From IMG/VR virus record IMGVR_UViG_3300042922_000643, positions 187,544-251,543 of that record: DNA of 64,000 bases, one strand, 5' to 3'. Position numbers and translations under genes: made by a program. Within the stretch, counting starts at the first letter, position 1. Every line of letters starts with the position of its first letter. The notes under the pieces were generated by a model that made no database searches, was not told the origin of the DNA, and worked only from the letters and a program-made list of their open reading frames with translations. Shown here piece by piece: positions 3,713-61,275 of the stretch.

Positions 3713-4222
3713 TTTCAGTATGTGTTTGACCGCTCACAAGTAACCTTGAATTCTGAGGTGAGGGGCTGCTAGAGATAGCAGTGATAAGGCAGGGCTTGGG
3801 TGAGCGTAAATAAGGTAAGGAGGAAGAGATCCAGACGGAGAGAGTCCGTCAACGAACTGTATTTGCCTTTGGGAGAGGCAGTTACCGTAAATGAGGTTGT
3901 CTTTTGCAAAATACTCTAATCGTACCCTTTTCGCACCAGTAAAGAGACTTTTATTTAAAACTCTACGAAAAAGGTGACCTCACATGAACAACAAGACTAT
4001 CAAAATCCCGAATACAACCAGATTGGCAGACGCACTGGGTTTTACCTCGCTAATAAAGGAGGTGATGCCGATGTAGATCCATTAGCACTTGAGCCATGCG
4101 TTTTTTAAGTGGAGGGTGGAGTTTCTCTTAGCCTGACCGACACGCCGTCCTAAAAGAATTTGGATTTCTGTCCTGAAGTATGACACTAAACTGCTTACAC
4201 CAACTATTAGGAGGATTTACAA

Positions 4223-4668: not shown

Positions 4669-5196
4669 ATGTCTAACCTGTCTTTCGAACAAATCCGTAA
4701 AGCTATGTCCGTTAATGTTGCTACTGCCCCGTCTGCTGCTCTGGAGAAAACGAAGAAGGCTGTAAGCGCCGTAGGATCGTTTGTAGGCGGTGTTCTTCCT
4801 GCGACTAACAACGCCCTGGATGAACGTACAGAACGTCTCCTGGAGCTTCTGGTGATCACTCAGATGGATCTCTCGCACTTGCGTGACCAACTCGGTATGG
4901 ATATCAATCCAGAGGAGATGGATCAGCAGGCTATGACGGATGCCGTGTCCATGTATATGAGCTCATTCAAGAAGAAGCGGGAGAAAGCTGTTGAACCTCA
5001 ACCTCAAATGACTGCTCCTGGAACGGTAGAGCAATCACGTCTGCAAGCATTCCTTCAGGGGGGCACACAAGAAGCACCAGCTCCATCTGCGGCTCCTGTC
5101 GTAAACGTAGCGCCTGTGGTAGGGGTGAGCAAACCTACCACCCTTGGAGACATGACTGTCTCCATGGAATCCCCAACAGAATGGCATAAGATGTAG
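4669..5196 (+). CDS. Hypothetical protein
   Basis: AAGGAG RBS, biased codon usage. Confidence 0.7.
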   Translation: MSNLSFEQIRKAMSVNVATAPSAALEKTKKAVSAVGSFVGGVLPATNNALDERTERLLELLVITQMDLSHLRDQLGMDINPEEMDQQAMTDAVSMYMSSFKKKREKAVEPQPQMTAPGTVEQSRLQAFLQGGTQEAPAPSAAPVVNVAPVVGVSKPTTLGDMTVSMESPTEWHKM

Positions 5197-46441: not shown

Positions 46442-46870
46442 ATGCCACGCAAACCTTGTATAACTCACAATGATGTTAAAATTTGGCGGGTATACGACGG
46501 CGGAGATTCAAGAGCTTATTGGTTTGCGTGGCATCCTGGCCATACAGAGGACGGCGACGATTTCCAATTCGATGTTCGTGATCTTTCCACTTACCGTCGT
46601 AGCTATGAAGAATATATTAAACAAGGTATGTCTGCTGCAAAAGCTTACGCAGGTTATCAGTCAGATATCAGAAGATTCATTAAGGAGGCCATTGATAAAG
46701 AAGAGATACTTCCTGATGGCCCCATCCCTCGTGATGACAACAATATTAAAGAACATCGTCCCGAAAAGCTGAAGTTAATTCGTGAAGTTTATGAAGCTAA
46801 GCGGCGGCAAACTTGGGAAGAAATGATCAATCGTTTTAATAAATCAAAATCGGAAGGAATGAGTATATAA
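46442..46870 (+). CDS. Hypothetical protein
   Basis: ORF between E2 and JAB. Confidence 0.6.
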   Translation: MPRKPCITHNDVKIWRVYDGGDSRAYWFAWHPGHTEDGDDFQFDVRDLSTYRRSYEEYIKQGMSAAKAYAGYQSDIRRFIKEAIDKEEILPDGPIPRDDNNIKEHRPEKLKLIREVYEAKRRQTWEEMINRFNKSKSEGMSI

Positions 46871-48246
46871 TGACAAAGAAAGAAAAAGCATTGGCAGCAG
46901 CAGCGGCAGCTGAAGCAACAACTGGAACAGCAACTACGGAGGTAACGGCTCCTGTTCAAACAAGAGAAGAAGCAATGGCAGCGTTTCGTGCTCAACTTGC
47001 TGGTGAAATTTGCCAGTATGTACCATTCTCCGTTGGCTTAACTCTTGATGATGTATCGAATATGCCTACAAACGTTGTTATCGCAAAAAATGGTCTGTTT
47101 CGTGTATCCAAGACACCTATCGGTTATTTTGCAACTCAGCTGGCCGTAGGAGACGCTAAATTCGTTATTCCTGGTGTTCAGGAAATCAAGAAGGGTGTTA
47201 CGCTTTCTATTCCAAAAATTCCTTTCGAGTACTGGCTGGAAGTTCTGTCATTTTATCGTGATGTATATAACAAGGATAAAACAGAAGCATCATTATTGTT
47301 CTTCTGGAATGACCGCGAAATTACATTGCCTACTGAATTCACTGATGGTACTCCGATTAAAGGTCTTTCGGAACGCGGCCAGCTAATCATGTATTGTCCG
47401 TCCCAGAAGAATAGTAGCGGTCTTTCAAACTTCACAGCAGATACTATGGTTCCATGGCTGCGGACGAACACAACGCCGTTACTCGAAACCCATTCTCACC
47501 ATACAATGGGCGCTTTCTGGTCGTCAACGGATAATGACAATGAGAATATGAATCAGTTCTATGGCGTCTACGGTGAAATTTTGAAACCTGATCCAAAATT
47601 CCTTTTCCGTTATGTGCATGGAACAGACAAGTCGGATATTGACTTCTATGAACTGTTTGAAAAACCTGTCACTATTACTCAGGTTATCATCGGCGATAAA
47701 GTAATTGATATTCAAAATGCCGTAGAATACAAAGGTCCATGGCCAAATCTTGAATATCCTGCTGACTGGATGGAGAAACACGCTGTTAGTTACACAGTGA
47801 CTCCCAGTTATGGCGGCGCAGCGGGTGGATATGGACGTGGCGGCCAGGGCGGTGGATACGGTCAAAATAATGGATATGGTTATGGCGGCGGCGCAAGCGG
47901 GTACGGACGCGGTGGTCTTGGCTATGATGATGACTATGTTGCAAGCCAATATCGTGCAGGAGCTGGAGGAACCGCAGGTGCTGCGGGACAAGCCAAGCTG
48001 CTTGAATTCGATGAGAGCAAAAAAAACACCGTGGACGGGGAGGACGTGGCCGATCTGACCGACGGAGTGGTCAAAAAGGTTATCGAAACAAAAACAAGCA
48101 CCGTTGAGATCGTGGCCTTGCAAAGATTGTCCCCCTTTTCCGAAAAGCAGATTTTTTCGCTTTGTGAGGAATTGTCAGAGATGGGCTACGACCAAGTTAT
48201 TCACGGGACGATCCAAGCGATGATTGGAATGACGGAGGAGGCGTAA
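46870..48246 (+). CDS. JAB/MPN+ metallo-isopeptidase (PRTRC protein A-like) with Gly/Tyr-rich tail
   Basis: E(A) ... ETHSHHTMGAFWSSTD JAMM motif. Confidence 0.9.
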   Translation: MTKKEKALAAAAAAEATTGTATTEVTAPVQTREEAMAAFRAQLAGEICQYVPFSVGLTLDDVSNMPTNVVIAKNGLFRVSKTPIGYFATQLAVGDAKFVIPGVQEIKKGVTLSIPKIPFEYWLEVLSFYRDVYNKDKTEASLLFFWNDREITLPTEFTDGTPIKGLSERGQLIMYCPSQKNSSGLSNFTADTMVPWLRTNTTPLLETHSHHTMGAFWSSTDNDNENMNQFYGVYGEILKPDPKFLFRYVHGTDKSDIDFYELFEKPVTITQVIIGDKVIDIQNAVEYKGPWPNLEYPADWMEKHAVSYTVTPSYGGAAGGYGRGGQGGGYGQNNGYGYGGGASGYGRGGLGYDDDYVASQYRAGAGGTAGAAGQAKLLEFDESKKNTVDGEDVADLTDGVVKKVIETKTSTVEIVALQRLSPFSEKQIFSLCEELSEMGYDQVIHGTIQAMIGMTEEA

Positions 48247-48292
48247 TTGCCTCCTGTTTTTCTTTACTAAAAATTGATCGGAGGAATGGAAA

Positions 48293-49255
48293 ATGGATTT
48301 TGAATTGAAAAATAACTTCGTATTGGATGTAAAAGCAAATGAACCAAAACATTTTGTACTGATCGGTTGCGGCGGTAATGGCGCATATTTCATTCGGGAC
48401 TTCATTCGTCAAGTTGCTATTCAAAACATGCAAATGTCTATGTCTTTGGATAAACGTTCGCACTGCGTTACTGTTATCGATGCCGACGAAGTTGAAGACA
48501 AGAATTTGACTCGTCAAAACTTCGTACAGAAGGACGTCGGATCTAATAAATCACAGATTCTTGCAAATCGTTACGGTTCAGCTTTCGGCGTACCGATTCG
48601 GTATGTGCCCGAATATATTCAGAACGAAGAGCATCTTTTGTCTATCATTCAGGGACAACCAGGAACGCCTGTCATCCTCGGAGCTGTCGATAACAATAAG
48701 ACCCGTAAGATCATCTATGATACCTATAAGAAGCTCAGCGGAGCCTTCTGGATCGATGCTGGTAACGAGCAATATGCAGGCCAGGTTGTTTGTGGGTATA
48801 ACTACCCTAGCGCACCTGACACAAGCAAAGCTCGGGAACCTCATCAGTTCTATATGCCTTGTGCAATTGATATTTATCCTGAAATCGCTGAAGCAACAGA
48901 TAAACTTCCTGGTGAATTGTCCTGCGCAGAACGTTCAGTATCTGCACCGCAGAACATTTTCACAAATATCACAGCTGCAACAATCATGATGGGATTTGCG
49001 AATATCATTCTCACCGCATCGAATGTTGCTGAAGGCGAAGGACTTCGCTGTCATGCTGTAACTTTCAATACTCATAATACCATCGCTCAGACTACTCGAT
49101 TGAATCATGAAGATTTATTAGCTGCACGCTATGTAGCTCCTCCTGTAGCTGAAGCACCAGAAGCTCCAGTCCCTACACCAGCGGTGAAGAAACCTGCATC
49201 CAAGAAAAAGAAAGCTCCTGCATCCGCTGCTCCTGTTCCTGCACCAACAGCATAA
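48293..49255 (+). CDS. ThiF/E1-like ubiquitin-activating adenylyltransferase
   Basis: GCGGNG, DADEVEDKNLTRQNF, GAVDN, WIDAGN and SCAE motifs. Confidence 0.92.
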   Translation: MDFELKNNFVLDVKANEPKHFVLIGCGGNGAYFIRDFIRQVAIQNMQMSMSLDKRSHCVTVIDADEVEDKNLTRQNFVQKDVGSNKSQILANRYGSAFGVPIRYVPEYIQNEEHLLSIIQGQPGTPVILGAVDNNKTRKIIYDTYKKLSGAFWIDAGNEQYAGQVVCGYNYPSAPDTSKAREPHQFYMPCAIDIYPEIAEATDKLPGELSCAERSVSAPQNIFTNITAATIMMGFANIILTASNVAEGEGLRCHAVTFNTHNTIAQTTRLNHEDLLAARYVAPPVAEAPEAPVPTPAVKKPASKKKKAPASAAPVPAPTA

Positions 49256-51423: not shown

Positions 51424-51972
51424 ATGAACCCAGTTCGAGAAGAAAATAAGATTACAATTGCTGAAACCGTTGCTGTAAAAACCTATATGACACGTCACCT
51501 CAGCGAGCTGCAATCGGAGCGTACTCGTGCTGCTACAGAGGAAGTCGATAAAGGCGCTACTGCTGAAATTCCAGCACGTAACGTTGATGTAATCACAGAT
51601 GAAATCTGGGAAACGTTCAAAGATATTCGAACTATTGAAAATCTCCTTGAACAAGCCAACATTCAAAATTATGTTGAATGGGATGGGCAAAAGATCACTG
51701 TTAGCGAAGCAATCTCTTTCGCTAAACAAATTCGTAGCCAAATTGATACGCTGAAGAGTCTCGGCCAACGAAAGAAGATTGATAAGGTTCCAAATCGTCC
51801 ATTTGGCACAACGGATTCGGTTCCCCAAATTCGTGTGGCTCTTTACGATCCTGATAAATACCGTGAATATGCGGCAAAGCTGGAACGTCAAGTCAATGCT
51901 CTTTCTAGAGACATTGATCACTCGAATCACACGAATTATATCGTGTTTGACGCTTCAAAATATATCGGATAA
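51424..51972 (+). CDS. Coiled-coil protein, DIP1984-like
   Basis: ITIAE...L..L ... TVSEAI...Q...LD..I...N pattern. Confidence 0.55.
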   Translation: MNPVREENKITIAETVAVKTYMTRHLSELQSERTRAATEEVDKGATAEIPARNVDVITDEIWETFKDIRTIENLLEQANIQNYVEWDGQKITVSEAISFAKQIRSQIDTLKSLGQRKKIDKVPNRPFGTTDSVPQIRVALYDPDKYREYAAKLERQVNALSRDIDHSNHTNYIVFDASKYIG

Positions 51973-52032
51973 TATGGAGGTAGACATAATCATCTTCCTC
52001 TTTTACGTAACCTGAGCTAGCACTTTGATGCT

Positions 52033-52151
52033 GCTCAGCTTGAAGGATATAACGTTTATACAGTGTTTTCGCTATAGACCGTTGACGCCTTAGCTGCTGA
52101 GGTTATATGCGATGTACGGCACTCGAAGACCTTGCATCCTTCAAGCTGAGC
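52033..52151 (+). ncRNA. UAUAC/CGAA hairpin element C
   Basis: Outer stem GCTCAGCTTGAAGGAT/ATCCTTCAAGCTGAGC; TATAC-AGTG ... CACT-CGAA. Confidence 0.7.
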
Positions 52152-52260: not shown

Positions 52261-52478
52261 TCCCCAGCTTGAAGAGTATAAGTGGTAGTAGGCCTGGAAG
52301 CAGCCATCTTAAGAGTGGGACAGCGGCTATAACTTGCTCCGTGACACTGGGCTAACTCGGGTAGCGGATAAAAGCATTTTATAGAGAGGAAATAAGGAGG
52401 CACCCCGTAACTGGTAAGGCCGACCTTTCCCTTTAGCGTAATAGCACACCATTTATACTTTTCAAGCTGTTTGGGGAA
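52261..52478 (+). ncRNA. RNA carrying a 23S rRNA L11-binding (H43/H44) domain mimic
   Basis: GTAGGCCTGGAAGCAGCCATCTTAAGAG (52288-52315) ... AGCGTAATAGCACAC (52435-52449), closed by an approximately 25-bp terminal stem. Confidence 0.7.
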
Positions 52479-52538
52479 CAGCAATCGTCTATTTCCAGAA
52501 AATCAGCCTCTATCATGAGGGAGGAGAGAAATCTCCTC

Positions 52539-52882
52539 CACAGCTTGAAGCTCCCAAGTTAAATAAAATAGTCGTTCAAATCGACGGCGTGGGTTATCCT
52601 CGCCAGCCATTGGAGGCACTTGGGAGTTACAAGCTGTGGGAACACAGCAGCAGGAAGATGTGAGCAACAGGGTTCTAGCCAGCTGACCTGGTTAGACGCG
52701 TATCGGCGGTGGTTATCCAGCGTGCGAGACACAACCAAACCAACTTGACATTGGTGTTACCTTAGGCAGGTACAAGAACCAACGTATAAGCGAATAACGG
52801 TTGACACCTTACGATAGTCACATCTAACATACTCCTTTGGATATTTCCTTTCGGAAATTCGGAAAAGTCTCTGCTTCCTGCT
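52539..52882 (+). ncRNA. Two further stem-enclosed structured RNA candidates
   Basis: CACAGCTTG..CTCCCAAGT/ACTTGGGAG..CAAGCTGTG; AGCAGGAAG/CTTCCTGCT and AGATGTGA/TCACATCT. Confidence 0.5.
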
Positions 52883-52951
52883 TTATTTTAATATTCTCTA
52901 GGGGGACACATGGTGTGTCCTCTTTTCCATTTCTATAAGGCGGTGATATTT

Positions 52952-53347
52952 ATGAATTACCTTGATCCACGAGAAGGAAAAGAAATCACAGGTAGTACGG
53001 GGGAAATCCGCGTCAGACTCGTTGGTGGATCATTTCATGAATCTGCCTTTGCTACTGTTAAAGAGGGGGACGAAGTTACCCTTCAAAAAGAACCCAAAAA
53101 TAAATATGACAGATATGCTATTGTAGTGCTCTCTGAAAATAACCGTGTTTTGGGTTATATTGCCAATAGAGTAGAAACTATTGGGAGAAACAAAGCAACA
53201 AATTCCGCAGCGGATGTATATAGACATATCAACGATAGAACATCAGCTATCATAATTGATAAGAGTCCAAGCTCTGCCGTACTTTTGATTAATGCTTCGA
53301 ATGAAGTTTTTTTAAATAGATTAAAGGAGGAGAAGTTCGATGATTAA
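52952..53347 (+). CDS. HIRAN domain protein with shared C-terminal tag
   Basis: LVG..F, GDEVTLQKEPKNKYDRYAIVV...LGYI; ends SNEVFLNRLKEEKFDD. Confidence 0.85.
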   Translation: MNYLDPREGKEITGSTGEIRVRLVGGSFHESAFATVKEGDEVTLQKEPKNKYDRYAIVVLSENNRVLGYIANRVETIGRNKATNSAADVYRHINDRTSAIIIDKSPSSAVLLINASNEVFLNRLKEEKFDD

Positions 53348-53929: not shown

Positions 53930-54069
53930 AGTAAAGTCACAATAGGATTTATACGCTTCGATATAGTCAAGACCCGTAGTCTATTACTGGGTTGAAGCCA
54001 CGTAACCTTCCATCGGAAACGTGGCTGTCTATAAATCTGCCGAAGATCCTATTGTGACTTTACTTTATA
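53925..54069 (+). ncRNA. UAUAC/CGAA hairpin element E
   Basis: Perfect 24-bp stem TATAAAGTAAAGTCACAATAGGAT/ATCCTATTGTGACTTTACTTTATA; TATAC 53950, CGAA 54041. Confidence 0.7.
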
Positions 54070-54086
54070 ATAAGGTGGGAACATTT

Positions 54087-56246
54087 ATGAGAACGTTAGT
54101 CCTTACTCGTGGTATAATGGCTTCTTCAAAATCAACATGGATTGCTGAAAATGGTCTTGCACCTTTTACTTTATCTAGTGATAACTTGCGTCTACTCCAT
54201 TCTGCTCCACAGCTTCAAGAAGATGGCAAGCAGGTAATAGCGGGATCGCAAGAAGGTAAGATCTGGAAACTTTTATTTGAAGTTTTGGAGCGACGTATGC
54301 AAAACGGCGATTTTACCGTCATTGATGCAACACATATTACTTCGAGTTCCATTTCTGAGTATCGTGAACTGGCTAATAAATATCGTTATCGCGTGTTTGT
54401 AGTGGATTTTACTAATGTTCCTTTGGAAATAGCTTTAGAGCGGAATAAAAATCGTGAAGAATATAAGTATGTTCCAGAACATAAGATTGAAATAGCTTAT
54501 GCTAAGCTTTCAGAAAATCATGTGCCTTCTTATGCGAAAGTTATTAAACCAGAAGAATTCTGGGATCATGTTTCATATACAAAAATTGATTACAGCTCTT
54601 ATCGCAAAATTCATCATATCGGGGATGTTCATGGATGCTACAGTGCATTAATGACTTACCTTTCAGGCGAAATGAAGGAAGACGAGTTGTATATTTTTGT
54701 TGGTGATTATCTAGACCGCGGCATTCAGAACCGCGAAGTTTTAGAATTCCTCATTCAGATTAAAGACCTTCCAAATGTTATTCTTCTTGAAGGTAATCAT
54801 GAAACTCATCTTCGCAAATGGTCAATGGATGAAACCGTTAAAAGTTTAGCATTCAACCACTATACCGAAAAAGAGATTCATGATGTTAATAAGTCCGCTG
54901 TTCGTGAACTGTGCAGAAAGTTCAGACAGGTTTGTTATTATGAATATTACGGCAAAACAGTGCTCGTCACTCATGGAGGCTTATCCTGCATTCCAAACGA
55001 ACTTGCTTTGATCTCGACTTCTCAATTTATTAAAGGAGTAGGAAATTATGAAGTTGATATTGATGCTATTTTCTCGGCTTCTGAACAAGATGGAACGTAC
55101 CAGGTCCATGGTCATCGCAACATCTTCAGACTGCCTATGCAAGCCGCTGAGCGTTCTTTTAACCTGGAGGGTAGAGTTGAATCAGGAGGAGACTTAAGGG
55201 CTCTTACACTAACTCCTGAGGGGTTTCAAGAGCATTGTATCCAGAATCATGTTTTTACAACAGAACATTCTCCAATGCCTCCCGTTGTAGGTTCCAAAAC
55301 AACTACAGACAATTTCATTGAATACCTTCAGTCACACAAAATGGTTAAAGAAACACAGATAACTGATCATATTTCATCTTTTAACTTTACACGTAAAGCA
55401 TTCAATAATGGCGTTTGGGATACGCTTAACATCAAGGCTCGCGGCCTTTTTGTGAATAAGCATACTCGAAAGATCGTTAGCCGATCTTATGATAAGTTTT
55501 TTAATATTGACGAAGTTCCAGCTACAAAGATGGGAACATTAGCCAATACCCTGGAATTTCCTGTGATTTTGTCAGAAAAACCGAATGGATACCTAGGTAT
55601 TATCGGGTATGATGAGGAGACAGATGAACTGATCTACTCTTCCAAGTCTGAAACTCGTGGTACTTATGCGGTATCATTCAGAAAACTTTTCGAAGAAAAA
55701 GTTCCTGTTGAAATACGTGCTTGGCTTAAAGGATATCTTTACGGAAATGACGTGTCGATAACTTTTGAGGTTATTCTTCCACAAGAAGATCCACACATCA
55801 TAGAATATAAAGAGAATACTTTGATCTTACTCGATATTATCCAGCGAAATGTTCAGTTCCAAAAGAGATCTTATTCCGAGGTTGTTGAGCTCGCAATGAA
55901 TCTTCTTCTTCCATATCGTAAAATCAAATATGTCTTCCATAACTGGTTAAGTTTCTATCACTGGTATCAAAACGCATCTCAAGATTATTCTGTTAAAGAA
56001 GAAGGGTATGTCCTTGAAGATAATTCAGGTTTTATGACAAAGATAAAATTACCGTACTATCTTTTCTGGAAGCAAATGCGTACAGCAAAATTCCAGGTGA
56101 AGATGGAGGGCTATATGCTTCCTCAGTGGTTGCCGCCAATTCCTGACGATCTTAAAAATTTCGTTGGGTGGGCTAAACAGCAAGATCAGGAGTATTTGAA
56201 ACGCGTGGATGTTATCCAGTTGCGTACAGATTACGAGGGCTCTTAA
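54087..56246 (+). CDS. RNA repair enzyme: polynucleotide kinase - metallophosphoesterase - Rnl1-like RNA ligase
   Basis: P-loop GIMASSKST and VIDAT; GDVHG, GDYLDRG, GNHE, HGG; KARGLF, SYDKFFN, EKPNG, EGYV, KIK. Confidence 0.9.
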   Translation: MRTLVLTRGIMASSKSTWIAENGLAPFTLSSDNLRLLHSAPQLQEDGKQVIAGSQEGKIWKLLFEVLERRMQNGDFTVIDATHITSSSISEYRELANKYRYRVFVVDFTNVPLEIALERNKNREEYKYVPEHKIEIAYAKLSENHVPSYAKVIKPEEFWDHVSYTKIDYSSYRKIHHIGDVHGCYSALMTYLSGEMKEDELYIFVGDYLDRGIQNREVLEFLIQIKDLPNVILLEGNHETHLRKWSMDETVKSLAFNHYTEKEIHDVNKSAVRELCRKFRQVCYYEYYGKTVLVTHGGLSCIPNELALISTSQFIKGVGNYEVDIDAIFSASEQDGTYQVHGHRNIFRLPMQAAERSFNLEGRVESGGDLRALTLTPEGFQEHCIQNHVFTTEHSPMPPVVGSKTTTDNFIEYLQSHKMVKETQITDHISSFNFTRKAFNNGVWDTLNIKARGLFVNKHTRKIVSRSYDKFFNIDEVPATKMGTLANTLEFPVILSEKPNGYLGIIGYDEETDELIYSSKSETRGTYAVSFRKLFEEKVPVEIRAWLKGYLYGNDVSITFEVILPQEDPHIIEYKENTLILLDIIQRNVQFQKRSYSEVVELAMNLLLPYRKIKYVFHNWLSFYHWYQNASQDYSVKEEGYVLEDNSGFMTKIKLPYYLFWKQMRTAKFQVKMEGYMLPQWLPPIPDDLKNFVGWAKQQDQEYLKRVDVIQLRTDYEGS

Positions 56247-57178: not shown

Positions 57179-57251
57179 ACAAGATTAACTCAGTTGGTAG
57201 AGTAGCCGCCATTATTGGAGGTCAGTCGCAGGTTCAAGTCCTGCATCTTGA
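57179..57251 (+). tRNA. tRNA-like element with non-canonical anticodon arm
   Basis: Acceptor CAAGAT/ATCTTG; D arm ACTC-AGTTGGTA-GAGT; T arm GCAGG-TTCAAGT-CCTGC; anticodon arm irregular; no CCA. Confidence 0.6.
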
Positions 57252-57278
57252 AAGTGGCGAAACATAAGTCAGTATTCC

Positions 57279-57350
57279 GCAGGTATAGCTCAGAGGTAGA
57301 GCGGGGCCAGGTTGCTGGTCATGTCGCGGGTTCGATCCCCGTTATCCGTG
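57279..57350 (+). tRNA. tRNA-like element with 4-nt anticodon loop
   Basis: D arm GCTC-AGAGGTA-GAGC; T arm with GGTTCGATCC; GGCCAG-GTTG-CTGGTC; no CCA. Confidence 0.6.
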
Positions 57351-60805: not shown

Positions 60806-61275
60806 TAATAGATGAACGGAAGTGTTCATGAGCGCCCTTGGCGAGCAATCGCCATTGAATAACTAGGTGAATTTAGGGGAGTCCTGGAGCAACAGTCGTG
60901 AGACAGATGTATGGTGACCCTAAGCGAAGTTTTGTGTAGATGGTGGCGGAATAGGTAGACGATAGGTCGGCTTAGTAGGTTTGGGTTGTGGTTCGAATCC
61001 ACGATGCGCAATACGCGTAGACGCCGTGACGGTAAAAACCTGGCTATGTGAGGTGCAAATCCTCACCCACTATACAAAAAACGTTCAACGACTATTCTTG
61101 AAATGGCCATGAGAATTGGCAACAGAAGTAGGGCCTATGCTTATAAAGATAGGCGGGTGAGAGTCCCTTAATCCGAAGCGCCTAGCATCCTCAGAACTTT
61201 GGGGATGGTGATATAGTCTACTCCCTCTCTGCTCGACAGAGAATTCAAAATATGGGGAAACCCAGGGTGAGATGG
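60806..61275 (+). mobile_element. Group I intron in dnaE (470 nt, no homing endonuclease ORF)
   Basis: 5' splice site after U60805 and terminal G61275; splicing restores GYA-F-NKSH. P3 CTAGGTG/CGCCTAG, P GAATTTAGGGGA, Q CCCTAAGC, R GTTCAACGACTA, S GATATAGTC. Confidence 0.92.

Follow-up and report, generated by a model that had tools for sequence, protein, structure and literature searches.

A family of free-standing phage RNAs that reproduces the GTPase-associated centre of 23S rRNA

Introduction

Why does a jumbo phage carry, between its protein genes, a copy of the GTPase-associated centre (GAC) of 23S rRNA closed by a stem of its own? The question is raised by a non-coding stretch of ~215 nt in the window, i.e. 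the 64 kb of DNA analysed here, which are the final part of a 251.5-kb IMG/VR phage record of soil origin. A sequence-only reading of this DNA had proposed that the stretch is a phage RNA imitating helices 43 and 44 (H43 and H44) of 23S rRNA, and the strings on which it relied are present on the + strand, inside a 940-nt gap between + strand ORFs. We find that the element, at 52262-52476 (+), reproduces helices 42-44 of 23S rRNA, i.e. the GAC, and that it belongs to a large family of phage RNAs; uL11, a ribosomal protein bound, like the translation GTPases, by this domain, is a plausible ligand.

Results

Similarity to 23S rRNA

Alignment to the actual E. coli rrlH gene sequence finds both halves of the rRNA domain in the order that had been reported: 52288-52312 corresponds to positions 1059-1085 and 52435-52449 to positions 1090-1104, and 18 of 21 bases are identical between 52288-52308 and E. 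coli 1059-1079. The significance of this similarity, which the sequence-only reading had left to be checked, is high. A covariance model (R2) for which 33 other members from phages were used, with the window left out, gives one match on the two strands of the 64 kb, at 52271-52465, with 112.2 bits and an E value of 7e-24; the fold of the + strand has z = −3.8 relative to shuffled sequences, compared with z = −0.95 for the − strand; and a model built from phage members alone (R1), when run over the E. coli K-12 chromosome, recognizes exactly seven places, each of them the GAC of one 23S (rrl) gene. The 251-kb genome contains a single copy of the GAC-like RNA.

The window holds no other rRNA, as had been claimed. 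Rfam detects rRNA in no part of the 64 kb, and the flanks of the element are phage ORFs; searches with Rfam 15, of the window at gathering threshold and at E <= 10 and of eight member loci at gathering threshold, returned only tRNAs and one group I intron, the window accounting for the intron and two tRNAs. Weak Rfam matches to MIR396 and ToxI were rejected as chance. The Rfam LSU model also leaves the window unreported at E <= 10, which is expected because the domain is interrupted by an insertion of 118 nt. The group I intron (60814-61243, +) scores 50.1 bits, barely at the Rfam gathering score; the two tRNA-like genes (57179-57252 and 57279-57350, both +) lie above the Rfam tRNA threshold and both have abnormal anticodon arms, the first being read by ARAGORN with a two-base anticodon and the second being missed.

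In Firmicute-type rRNA, AAAGAGU is directly followed by GCGUAAUAGC. The phage RNA can therefore be described as the rRNA domain with a helix (P3) and a UUUR linker placed between 1090 and 1091 and with A in place of U1101. For matching a phage GAC to the GAC of host rRNA, the single usable assembly contained three different rRNA types.

Architecture of the element

The whole unit (52262-52476), which is supported by the leave-one-out model R2, by an inverted repeat and by the fold score of z = −3.8, consists of a terminal stem (P1), an H43-like hairpin, P3 with its insert and a conserved arm, and an H44-like hairpin; all of these parts are on the + strand. P1 is the equivalent of H42. Its 5′ strand (52262-52285) contains CAGCUUGAAG and has its partner at 52449-52476; the long terminal stem described earlier proves to be 22 bp plus CCCC/GGGG across a UUU bulge (52262-52287 with 52449-52476), i.e. 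an anchored length of 26 bp. The H43-like hairpin (52286-52310) represents rRNA positions 1057-1081, as judged from the alignment to rrlH 1059-1085, and its loop reads CUGGAAGCA vs. UUAGAAGCA in rRNA. The junction AAGAGU that follows (52311-52316) is equivalent to A1084, A1085, G1087, A1088 and G-U(1090), the 1082-1086 mini-hairpin being shrunk to AA in this copy.

The sequence-only reading had also proposed that the insertion is closed by its own helix; the helix exists, but its register was not GGGA/TTCC as given, because covariation puts the 3′ strand one base further 3′ (GGGA/UCCC). P3 is formed by GGGA at 52317-52320, which pairs in a fixed register across the family, and UCCC at 52428-52431, whose register is supported by covariation, and it encloses 107 nt. 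These comprise a variable insert (52321-52398), for which an MFE fold predicts nested hairpins, and the conserved arm (52399-52421), which is supported by a 22-mer shared with IMG/VR contigs, by covariation and by an arm-only model (R3) that was built without the window and finds it at 52385-52429 with 51.8 bits. The elements of the arm are, in order, a 2-bp stem (GG/CC), CAC, CC, a CCG/UGG stem with a UAAC tetraloop, and UAAGG. We considered and rejected the arm as a second rRNA mimic: its alignment to 23S positions 2115-2129 (L1 stalk) scores only 20, for an estimated E of ~0.1; a likeness to H69 seen by eye is not the best alignment; and the arm-only model has no match in the E. coli chromosome or in 23S/5S loci. 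A UUU linker (52432-52434; UUU in 76 of 83 distinct members) leads from P3 into the H44-like hairpin (52435-52447), which represents 1090-1102 by alignment to rrlH 1090-1104 and carries the loop GUAAUA including A1095; the equivalent of A1103 and the 3′ strand of P1, with its UUU bulge at 52470-52472, complete the unit (52448-52476).

A family in phage genomes

The search for homologues that had been recommended recovered 138 distinct relatives, after removal of duplicates, in phage contigs and in cultured phages. A blastn search gave one cultured relative, Aeromonas phage 4_4572, whose copy, with a tRNA-Met gene close downstream, has 32 of 34 bases in common with E. coli 1055-1088. The 22-nt arm motif common to the window and 4_4572 matches 19 IMG/VR contigs, a looser 3′ pattern matches 49, and a 5′ pattern covering the GAC-like part alone matches at least 119. 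Cultured carriers are Aeromonas phage 4_4572, Pseudomonas phage pf16 (between tRNA-Asn and tRNA-Pro), the Xanthomonas jumbo phage XacN1 and Ralstonia phage RSP15, and probably also Pseudomonas phage UNO-G1W1 and Vibrio phage 2.275.O; the GenBank records of the cultured carriers leave the sites unannotated. A few members are on contigs binned to bacterial or archaeal genomes, and 85 matches of a 16-base pattern in prokaryotic genomes were rejected as mostly chance, without H43 and H44. A search by the upstream ORF gave no relatives of the window's phage.

The RNA is built as follows, from 5′ to 3′: P1, two or three purine-rich bases, H43, the 1082-1086 mini-hairpin, GAGU, P3, UUU, H44, A and the return of P1. 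The sequence of P1 is variable, and P3 is a 4-bp helix around an insert of 23 to ~350 nt (the range found for the stretch from GAGU to the UUU linker), whose length is lineage-specific. The window belongs to a subfamily of ~20 of the 107 members recovered by the 5′ pattern, in which the arm occupies the 3′ end of the insert. Another insert subtype is marked by the motif pair GCGAAAUGY ... RGUGAUGUGG, which resembles a box C or kink-turn motif, recurs inside P3 of many members (e.g. L026, L129, L017, L165 and L193) and is absent from the window copy. One viral contig (L011) carries three paralogous GAC-like RNAs within 2.4 kb (2695-2901, 3882-4045 and 4755-5062), in which the core is kept, including a U/U-A triple, the P3 domains differ, and only one has the canonical arm. 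On a high-GC contig of an Actinomycetota MAG (L063, 4270-4327, −), the arm, the P3 3′ strand and an H44-like hairpin occur together with a 5′ half unlike H43; this sequence may be a divergent actinophage variant.

Covariation and tertiary contacts

We aligned 101 distinct sequences to a model made without the window and without P3. Pairing is found in 94.8% of cells vs. 70.8% in shuffles, and the covariation score is 0.528 vs. 0.141, a value that none of 500 shuffles reaches; controls with slid partners stay at or below 0.10. Changes on both sides occur in 17 of 23 pairs, all nine modelled pairs of P1 covary across the 101 members, and helices 2, 3 and 6 are at least 99% paired with compensatory changes (RNAalifold and pair counts). 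For P3 at its fixed register, 92.5% of cells pair among 83 distinct strand pairs, compared with 47% when partners are permuted (maximum of 55.7% in 1000 trials). The arm behaves in the same way: its stem pair covaries (G-C 27, U-A 20, A-U 4, C-G 1), as does the pair closing its loop (G·U, U-A, G-C, A-U), the tetraloop is UAAN or GNRA, and the asymmetric internal loop between the 2-bp and 3-bp stems, CACC opposite UAAGG, is invariant.

The likeness extends to tertiary structure, for which we compiled position-by-position statistics from 52 members. Within H43, the pair 1064-1074 is C-G in 43 and A-U in 9, and 1058-1080 takes all four pair types. The GAC of rRNA contains the tertiary triples C1072·(C1092-G1099) and G1071·(G1091-C1100) (PMC2952862); in the family, the first is C/C-G in 47, U/U-A in 4 and C/C·A in 1, with U/U-A also found in a divergent paralog on contig L011, and the second is G/G-C in 51 of 52. 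G1091-C1100 is present in all 52 and A1095 of the H44 loop in 51. The lone pair 1082-1086, which E. coli forms as U-A and H. marismortui as C-G (PMC2952862), alternates between U-A, C-G and A-U in the family while UAA is retained in the loop; position 1061 is U, A or G, and U1061A is a known stabilizer of GAC tertiary structure (PMC1802607). We conclude that the family has an rRNA-like secondary and tertiary fold. The proposal of H43/H44 mimicry by a phage RNA is borne out by the size of the family, by covariation in every helix, by the covarying triple and lone pair, and by the reciprocal model match.

These covariation data refute the most trivial explanation of the element, i.e. an inert fragment of host 23S rRNA or an assembly contaminant, to which we give practically no credence. 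Real rRNA pieces do occur in phage records: the match in Paenibacillus phage Pd_22F (L258, MZ092003.1, ~82.8-85.2 kb) is genuine 23S rRNA with flanking rRNA and was left out of the family; it lies at the genome end and represents host DNA that was packaged or else an artefact of assembly. The window element, however, has no flanking rRNA; its insertion is absent from every rRNA examined; the same sequence was found in three separate soil metagenome runs; and the 138 distinct relatives carry compensatory changes and a covarying triple.

Genomic context

A same-strand tRNA gene lies within 30 nt of the core in 58 of 137 members (42%), where few nucleotides are left beyond P1, and within 400 nt in 85; 74 of the 137 have no tRNA within 100 nt. 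The window phage has only three tRNA-like genes in 251 kb, and its GAC-like RNA lies outside any array. The median length of P1 is no different by tRNA proximity (10 vs. 11 bp, p = 0.28), and a P1 of at least 20 bp is found in 12 of 74 members away from tRNAs vs. none of 58 beside them. In the window, the GAC-like RNA (element B) is the middle one of three strongly structured elements, flanked by element A (52033-52151, z = −4.65) and element C (52538-52639, z = −7.76), and CAGCUUGAAG stands at the start of the long closing stem in each of them. Elements A and C match neither Rfam nor the GAC models and may be co-processed small RNAs; element C holds a hairpin like a tRNA T-arm (GUCG-UUCAAAU-CGAC). 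The restriction of very long P1 stems to members away from tRNAs, together with the closing stem shared by the three RNAs, suggests two excision routes: array members would be released from the transcript by tRNA-processing enzymes, and the window copy probably by a double-strand-specific nuclease cutting its 26-bp stem.

Upstream of the three stem-closed RNAs lies a promoter-like site (TTGACG, 17 nt, TAATAT; 51947-51975, +), which is a weak consensus match of a kind no more numerous in this sequence than in shuffled sequence. Immediately downstream of the cluster, a gene for a HIRAN-domain protein (52910-53347, +) is overlapped at its start by a terminator-like hairpin (52900-52924). Further upstream, at 46870-49255 (+), adjacent genes encode a protein that weakly matches a JAB domain and one that is ThiF/E1-like; the pairing suggests ubiquitin-like conjugation or deconjugation and may serve anti-defence.

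This context bears on the reading of the RNA as a cis-acting element, i.e. an mRNA leader, a riboswitch-like regulator or a spacer guiding the processing of tRNA arrays. The RNA lies between genes, shares the strand of its neighbours and is often only a few nucleotides from a tRNA, and rRNA-mimicking leaders are an established regulatory principle. However, no downstream gene is conserved and no ribosomal-protein gene is nearby; the RNA has a terminal stem that closes it; over half of the members (the 74 of 137 given above) have no tRNA within 100 nt; and tRNA processing needs no GAC-like tertiary fold. We consider a cis-acting role very improbable.

No protein gene recurs as a neighbour in more than 4 of 52 loci, which points to a partner supplied by the host, and genes for uL11, MazG and RelA/SpoT are absent from the phage genome, a result that speaks neither for nor against a role in the stringent response. 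The gene at 54021-56246 (+), ~1.5 kb downstream of the GAC-like RNA, encodes a 741-aa fusion of polynucleotide kinase (PNK; AAA_33), metallophosphatase and T4-type RNA ligase 1 (Rnl1), i.e. a tRNA/RNA repair system in one protein, and homologs of ~41% identity lie 1.2-1.4 kb downstream of the RNA in two further loci, L142 and L151. With only 3 of 167 loci, the fusion was rejected as a conserved neighbour.

The repair enzyme nevertheless enters into one further explanation, which by analogy to phage tRNAs that replace or evade the targets of anticodon nucleases sees the RNA as an anti-defence decoy: a free GAC replica, with or without uL11, would bait a toxin, from host immunity or from a competitor, by which the stalk base is modified or cleaved. 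Toxins for this exact site exist, e.g. Tre23, which ADP-ribosylates helix 44 of 23S rRNA in the GAC (PMC8661411). The family RNA is found in tRNA arrays, precedes the PNK-phosphatase-Rnl1 enzyme by 1.2-1.5 kb in the three loci named above, follows a gene annotated as 2′-5′ RNA ligase in XacN1, and keeps a highly conserved H44 loop (A1095 in 51 of 52). The linkage to the repair enzyme is nevertheless confined to those 3 of 167 loci, tens of thousands of ribosomes would have to be outcompeted, and our literature searches found no anti-phage system that targets the GAC; we know of none. We regard this decoy reading as unlikely.

Suppressor-type tRNAs are present in 13 of 167 loci (e.g. L131, L122 and L114), a count taken without a baseline, and comprise 12 amber (CUA), one ochre and no opal; the one in L131 ends 16 nt before the RNA core. 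A link to UAG recoding and RF1 is possible, as a lead that lacks a baseline.

Conservation of the uL11 footprint

The C-domain of uL11 contacts positions 1058-1060, 1062-1065, 1075-1083 and 1088 of the GAC (PMC1802607). Family members all have G1059, U1060, G1063 and A1077; G1062, U1065, C1075, U1078 and C1079 are kept in 92-98% and C1076 in 87% of members; and position 1088, the A of GAGU, is present in nearly all. Every contact position is invariant, at least 87% conserved or covarying as part of a pair, with 1082-1083 missing from the window copy, compared with P1 and P3, which vary freely. Position 1067 is A in 43, G in 7 and U in 2 members (83% A). A1067 is the base contacted by translation factors and thiostrepton, so its relaxation fits selection for the fold or for uL11 better than selection for contact with factors or thiostrepton.

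The window copy is an atypical member of the family: it has G1067 and C1065, and a 3-nt deletion removes the 1082-1086 mini-hairpin. The functional case is weakened by the incomplete conservation of A1067 in the family, with G in this copy, and by the loss here of the 1082-1086 element, which falls in the range contacted by uL11; with G1067, C1065 and no mini-hairpin, the affinity of the window copy is less certain than that of the family consensus. More generally, the phage RNAs have G·A or A·A where E. coli rRNA has the pair A1090-U1101, and their junction is four-way instead of three-way, so that their affinity for uL11 could differ from that of rRNA. The base identities of H43 could also be kept for RNA-RNA tertiary contacts alone.

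The relaxed A1067 also speaks for a reading in which the GAC fold is reused as a scaffold that merely holds P3, with the real function (another partner, catalysis or oligomerization) residing in P3 and with no ribosomal ligand. P3 is always present, at 23 to ~350 nt, and contains recurring sub-modules, i.e. the arm with its GNRA-like tetraloop, which could dock back on the core, and the GCGAAAUGY...RGUGAUGUGG motif. Minimal members such as L186, however, have as P3 a mere 23-nt hairpin, from which the core alone appears sufficient; H43 and H44 retain rRNA base identities beyond what pairing demands; and the paralogs on contig L011 vary in P3 and keep the core. We doubt the scaffold reading.

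Discussion

Our analysis establishes what this RNA looks like and suggests what it may do. The sequence-only reading had put forward, as possible roles, titration of uL11 that blunts the stringent response, baiting of toxins and recruitment of translation factors. Conservation of the uL11 footprint makes binding of uL11, or a decoy action, plausible for the GAC-like RNA; the footprint is kept while P1 and P3 drift, and no partner is encoded by the phage, which points to host uL11 as the ligand. As a core mechanism, we hold the binding of uL11 or of other stalk-base ligands to be quite possible, at slightly short of even chances.

The mechanism that we propose is as follows: a stable, trans-acting phage RNA, whose core takes the tertiary structure of the 23S GAC (H42-H44), would be freed from its transcript and bind host uL11 off the ribosome, and ribosomes would then face competition from a free stalk-base replica for the ligands of that site. 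The phage would probably gain in one of two ways: uL11 would be drained from the ribosome pool, or effectors aimed at the stalk base would be absorbed. Loss of uL11, as known from rplK mutants, weakens both RelA activation and RF1-dependent termination at UAG. Two points count against a simple sponge: the RNA would need to rival ribosomes in number, and a sponge leaves the elaborate, subtype-specific P3 domains unexplained. We entertain, tentatively and as somewhat less than an even prospect, that many phages encode a free, working replica of a ribosomal functional centre and that this RNA recruits host uL11 into an off-ribosome particle that would reprogram or shield translation during infection, either through a loosening of RelA or RF1 control or through the capture of immune effectors directed at the ribosome.

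The comparison with known systems starts with the 23S GAC itself (E. coli 1051-1108). The phage RNA agrees with it in its helices and their order, in the 1067 and 1095 loops and in the covarying 1072 triple; the family also has the 1082-1086 mini-hairpin, of which the window copy keeps only AA, and in many phage members H43 is identical over 21 nt. It differs from the rRNA domain in being phage-encoded and free-standing, at ~100-450 nt and with no other rRNA; in being closed by a variable stem instead of H42; in having P3 and the UUUR linker between 1090 and 1091, which make a four-way junction; and in having a purine·A mismatch at 1090-1101 and an A1067 that is not invariant.

Leaders of ribosomal-protein operons, such as the L10 leader and the L1 site in the L11 operon, are also RNAs that copy an rRNA binding site of a ribosomal protein off the ribosome. 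They belong to cellular genomes, where they regulate ribosomal-protein mRNAs in cis, and they usually imitate rRNA only in part; in contrast, the phage element stands alone, is closed, has no ribosomal-protein gene and carries its mimicry to tertiary contacts. No Rfam leader family matches it. With the RNAs of phage tRNA clusters (phage tRNAs, GOLLD and ROOL), to which the stable RNAs C and D of T4 also belong, it shares a position in or beside tRNA arrays, a structured non-coding nature and, presumably, co-transcription and excision. The Rfam models of GOLLD, ROOL, YrlA and tRNA do not match the GAC-like RNA, and to our knowledge neither GOLLD, ROOL nor any other tRNA-cluster RNA copies an rRNA domain. 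Phage pseudo-ToxI is another phage RNA that imitates a host RNA, possibly to neutralize a host factor; pseudo-ToxI copies an antitoxin repeat and its target has been demonstrated (PMC3475682), whereas the GAC-like RNA copies a functional centre of the ribosome and its target is only proposed.

Neither Rfam 15 nor full-text literature searches gave a description of a phage RNA mimicking the GAC. The present family may be among the ~10,000 unnamed candidates in a catalogue of viral structured RNAs (PMC10690425), which states that they do not overlap with predicted rRNA and is silent on rRNA mimicry. The family is large and well supported, is absent from Rfam and from GenBank annotation, and is apparently undescribed. 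Viral decoy RNAs and rRNA-mimicking leaders are known; no virus is known to carry a functional centre of rRNA as a stand-alone copy.

If the ligands of the stalk base do bind, phages manipulate the ribosome by means of a detachable replica of one of its RNA active sites, a strategy that we know for no virus. In that case no earlier viral RNA would have been a decoy for an rRNA domain, and the tRNA arrays of phages would have a cargo of a new class, one that explains the purpose of gaps in them. Phage biology would be connected with the stringent response, with termination and recoding, or with toxins that attack the ribosome. Structural studies and work on thiopeptide antibiotics would also gain GAC variants that occur in nature, fold by themselves and have insertions built in. 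Because pf16, 4_4572, XacN1 and RSP15 are cultured, the question is directly testable, and whatever the function proves to be, a large new family of structured RNAs stands.
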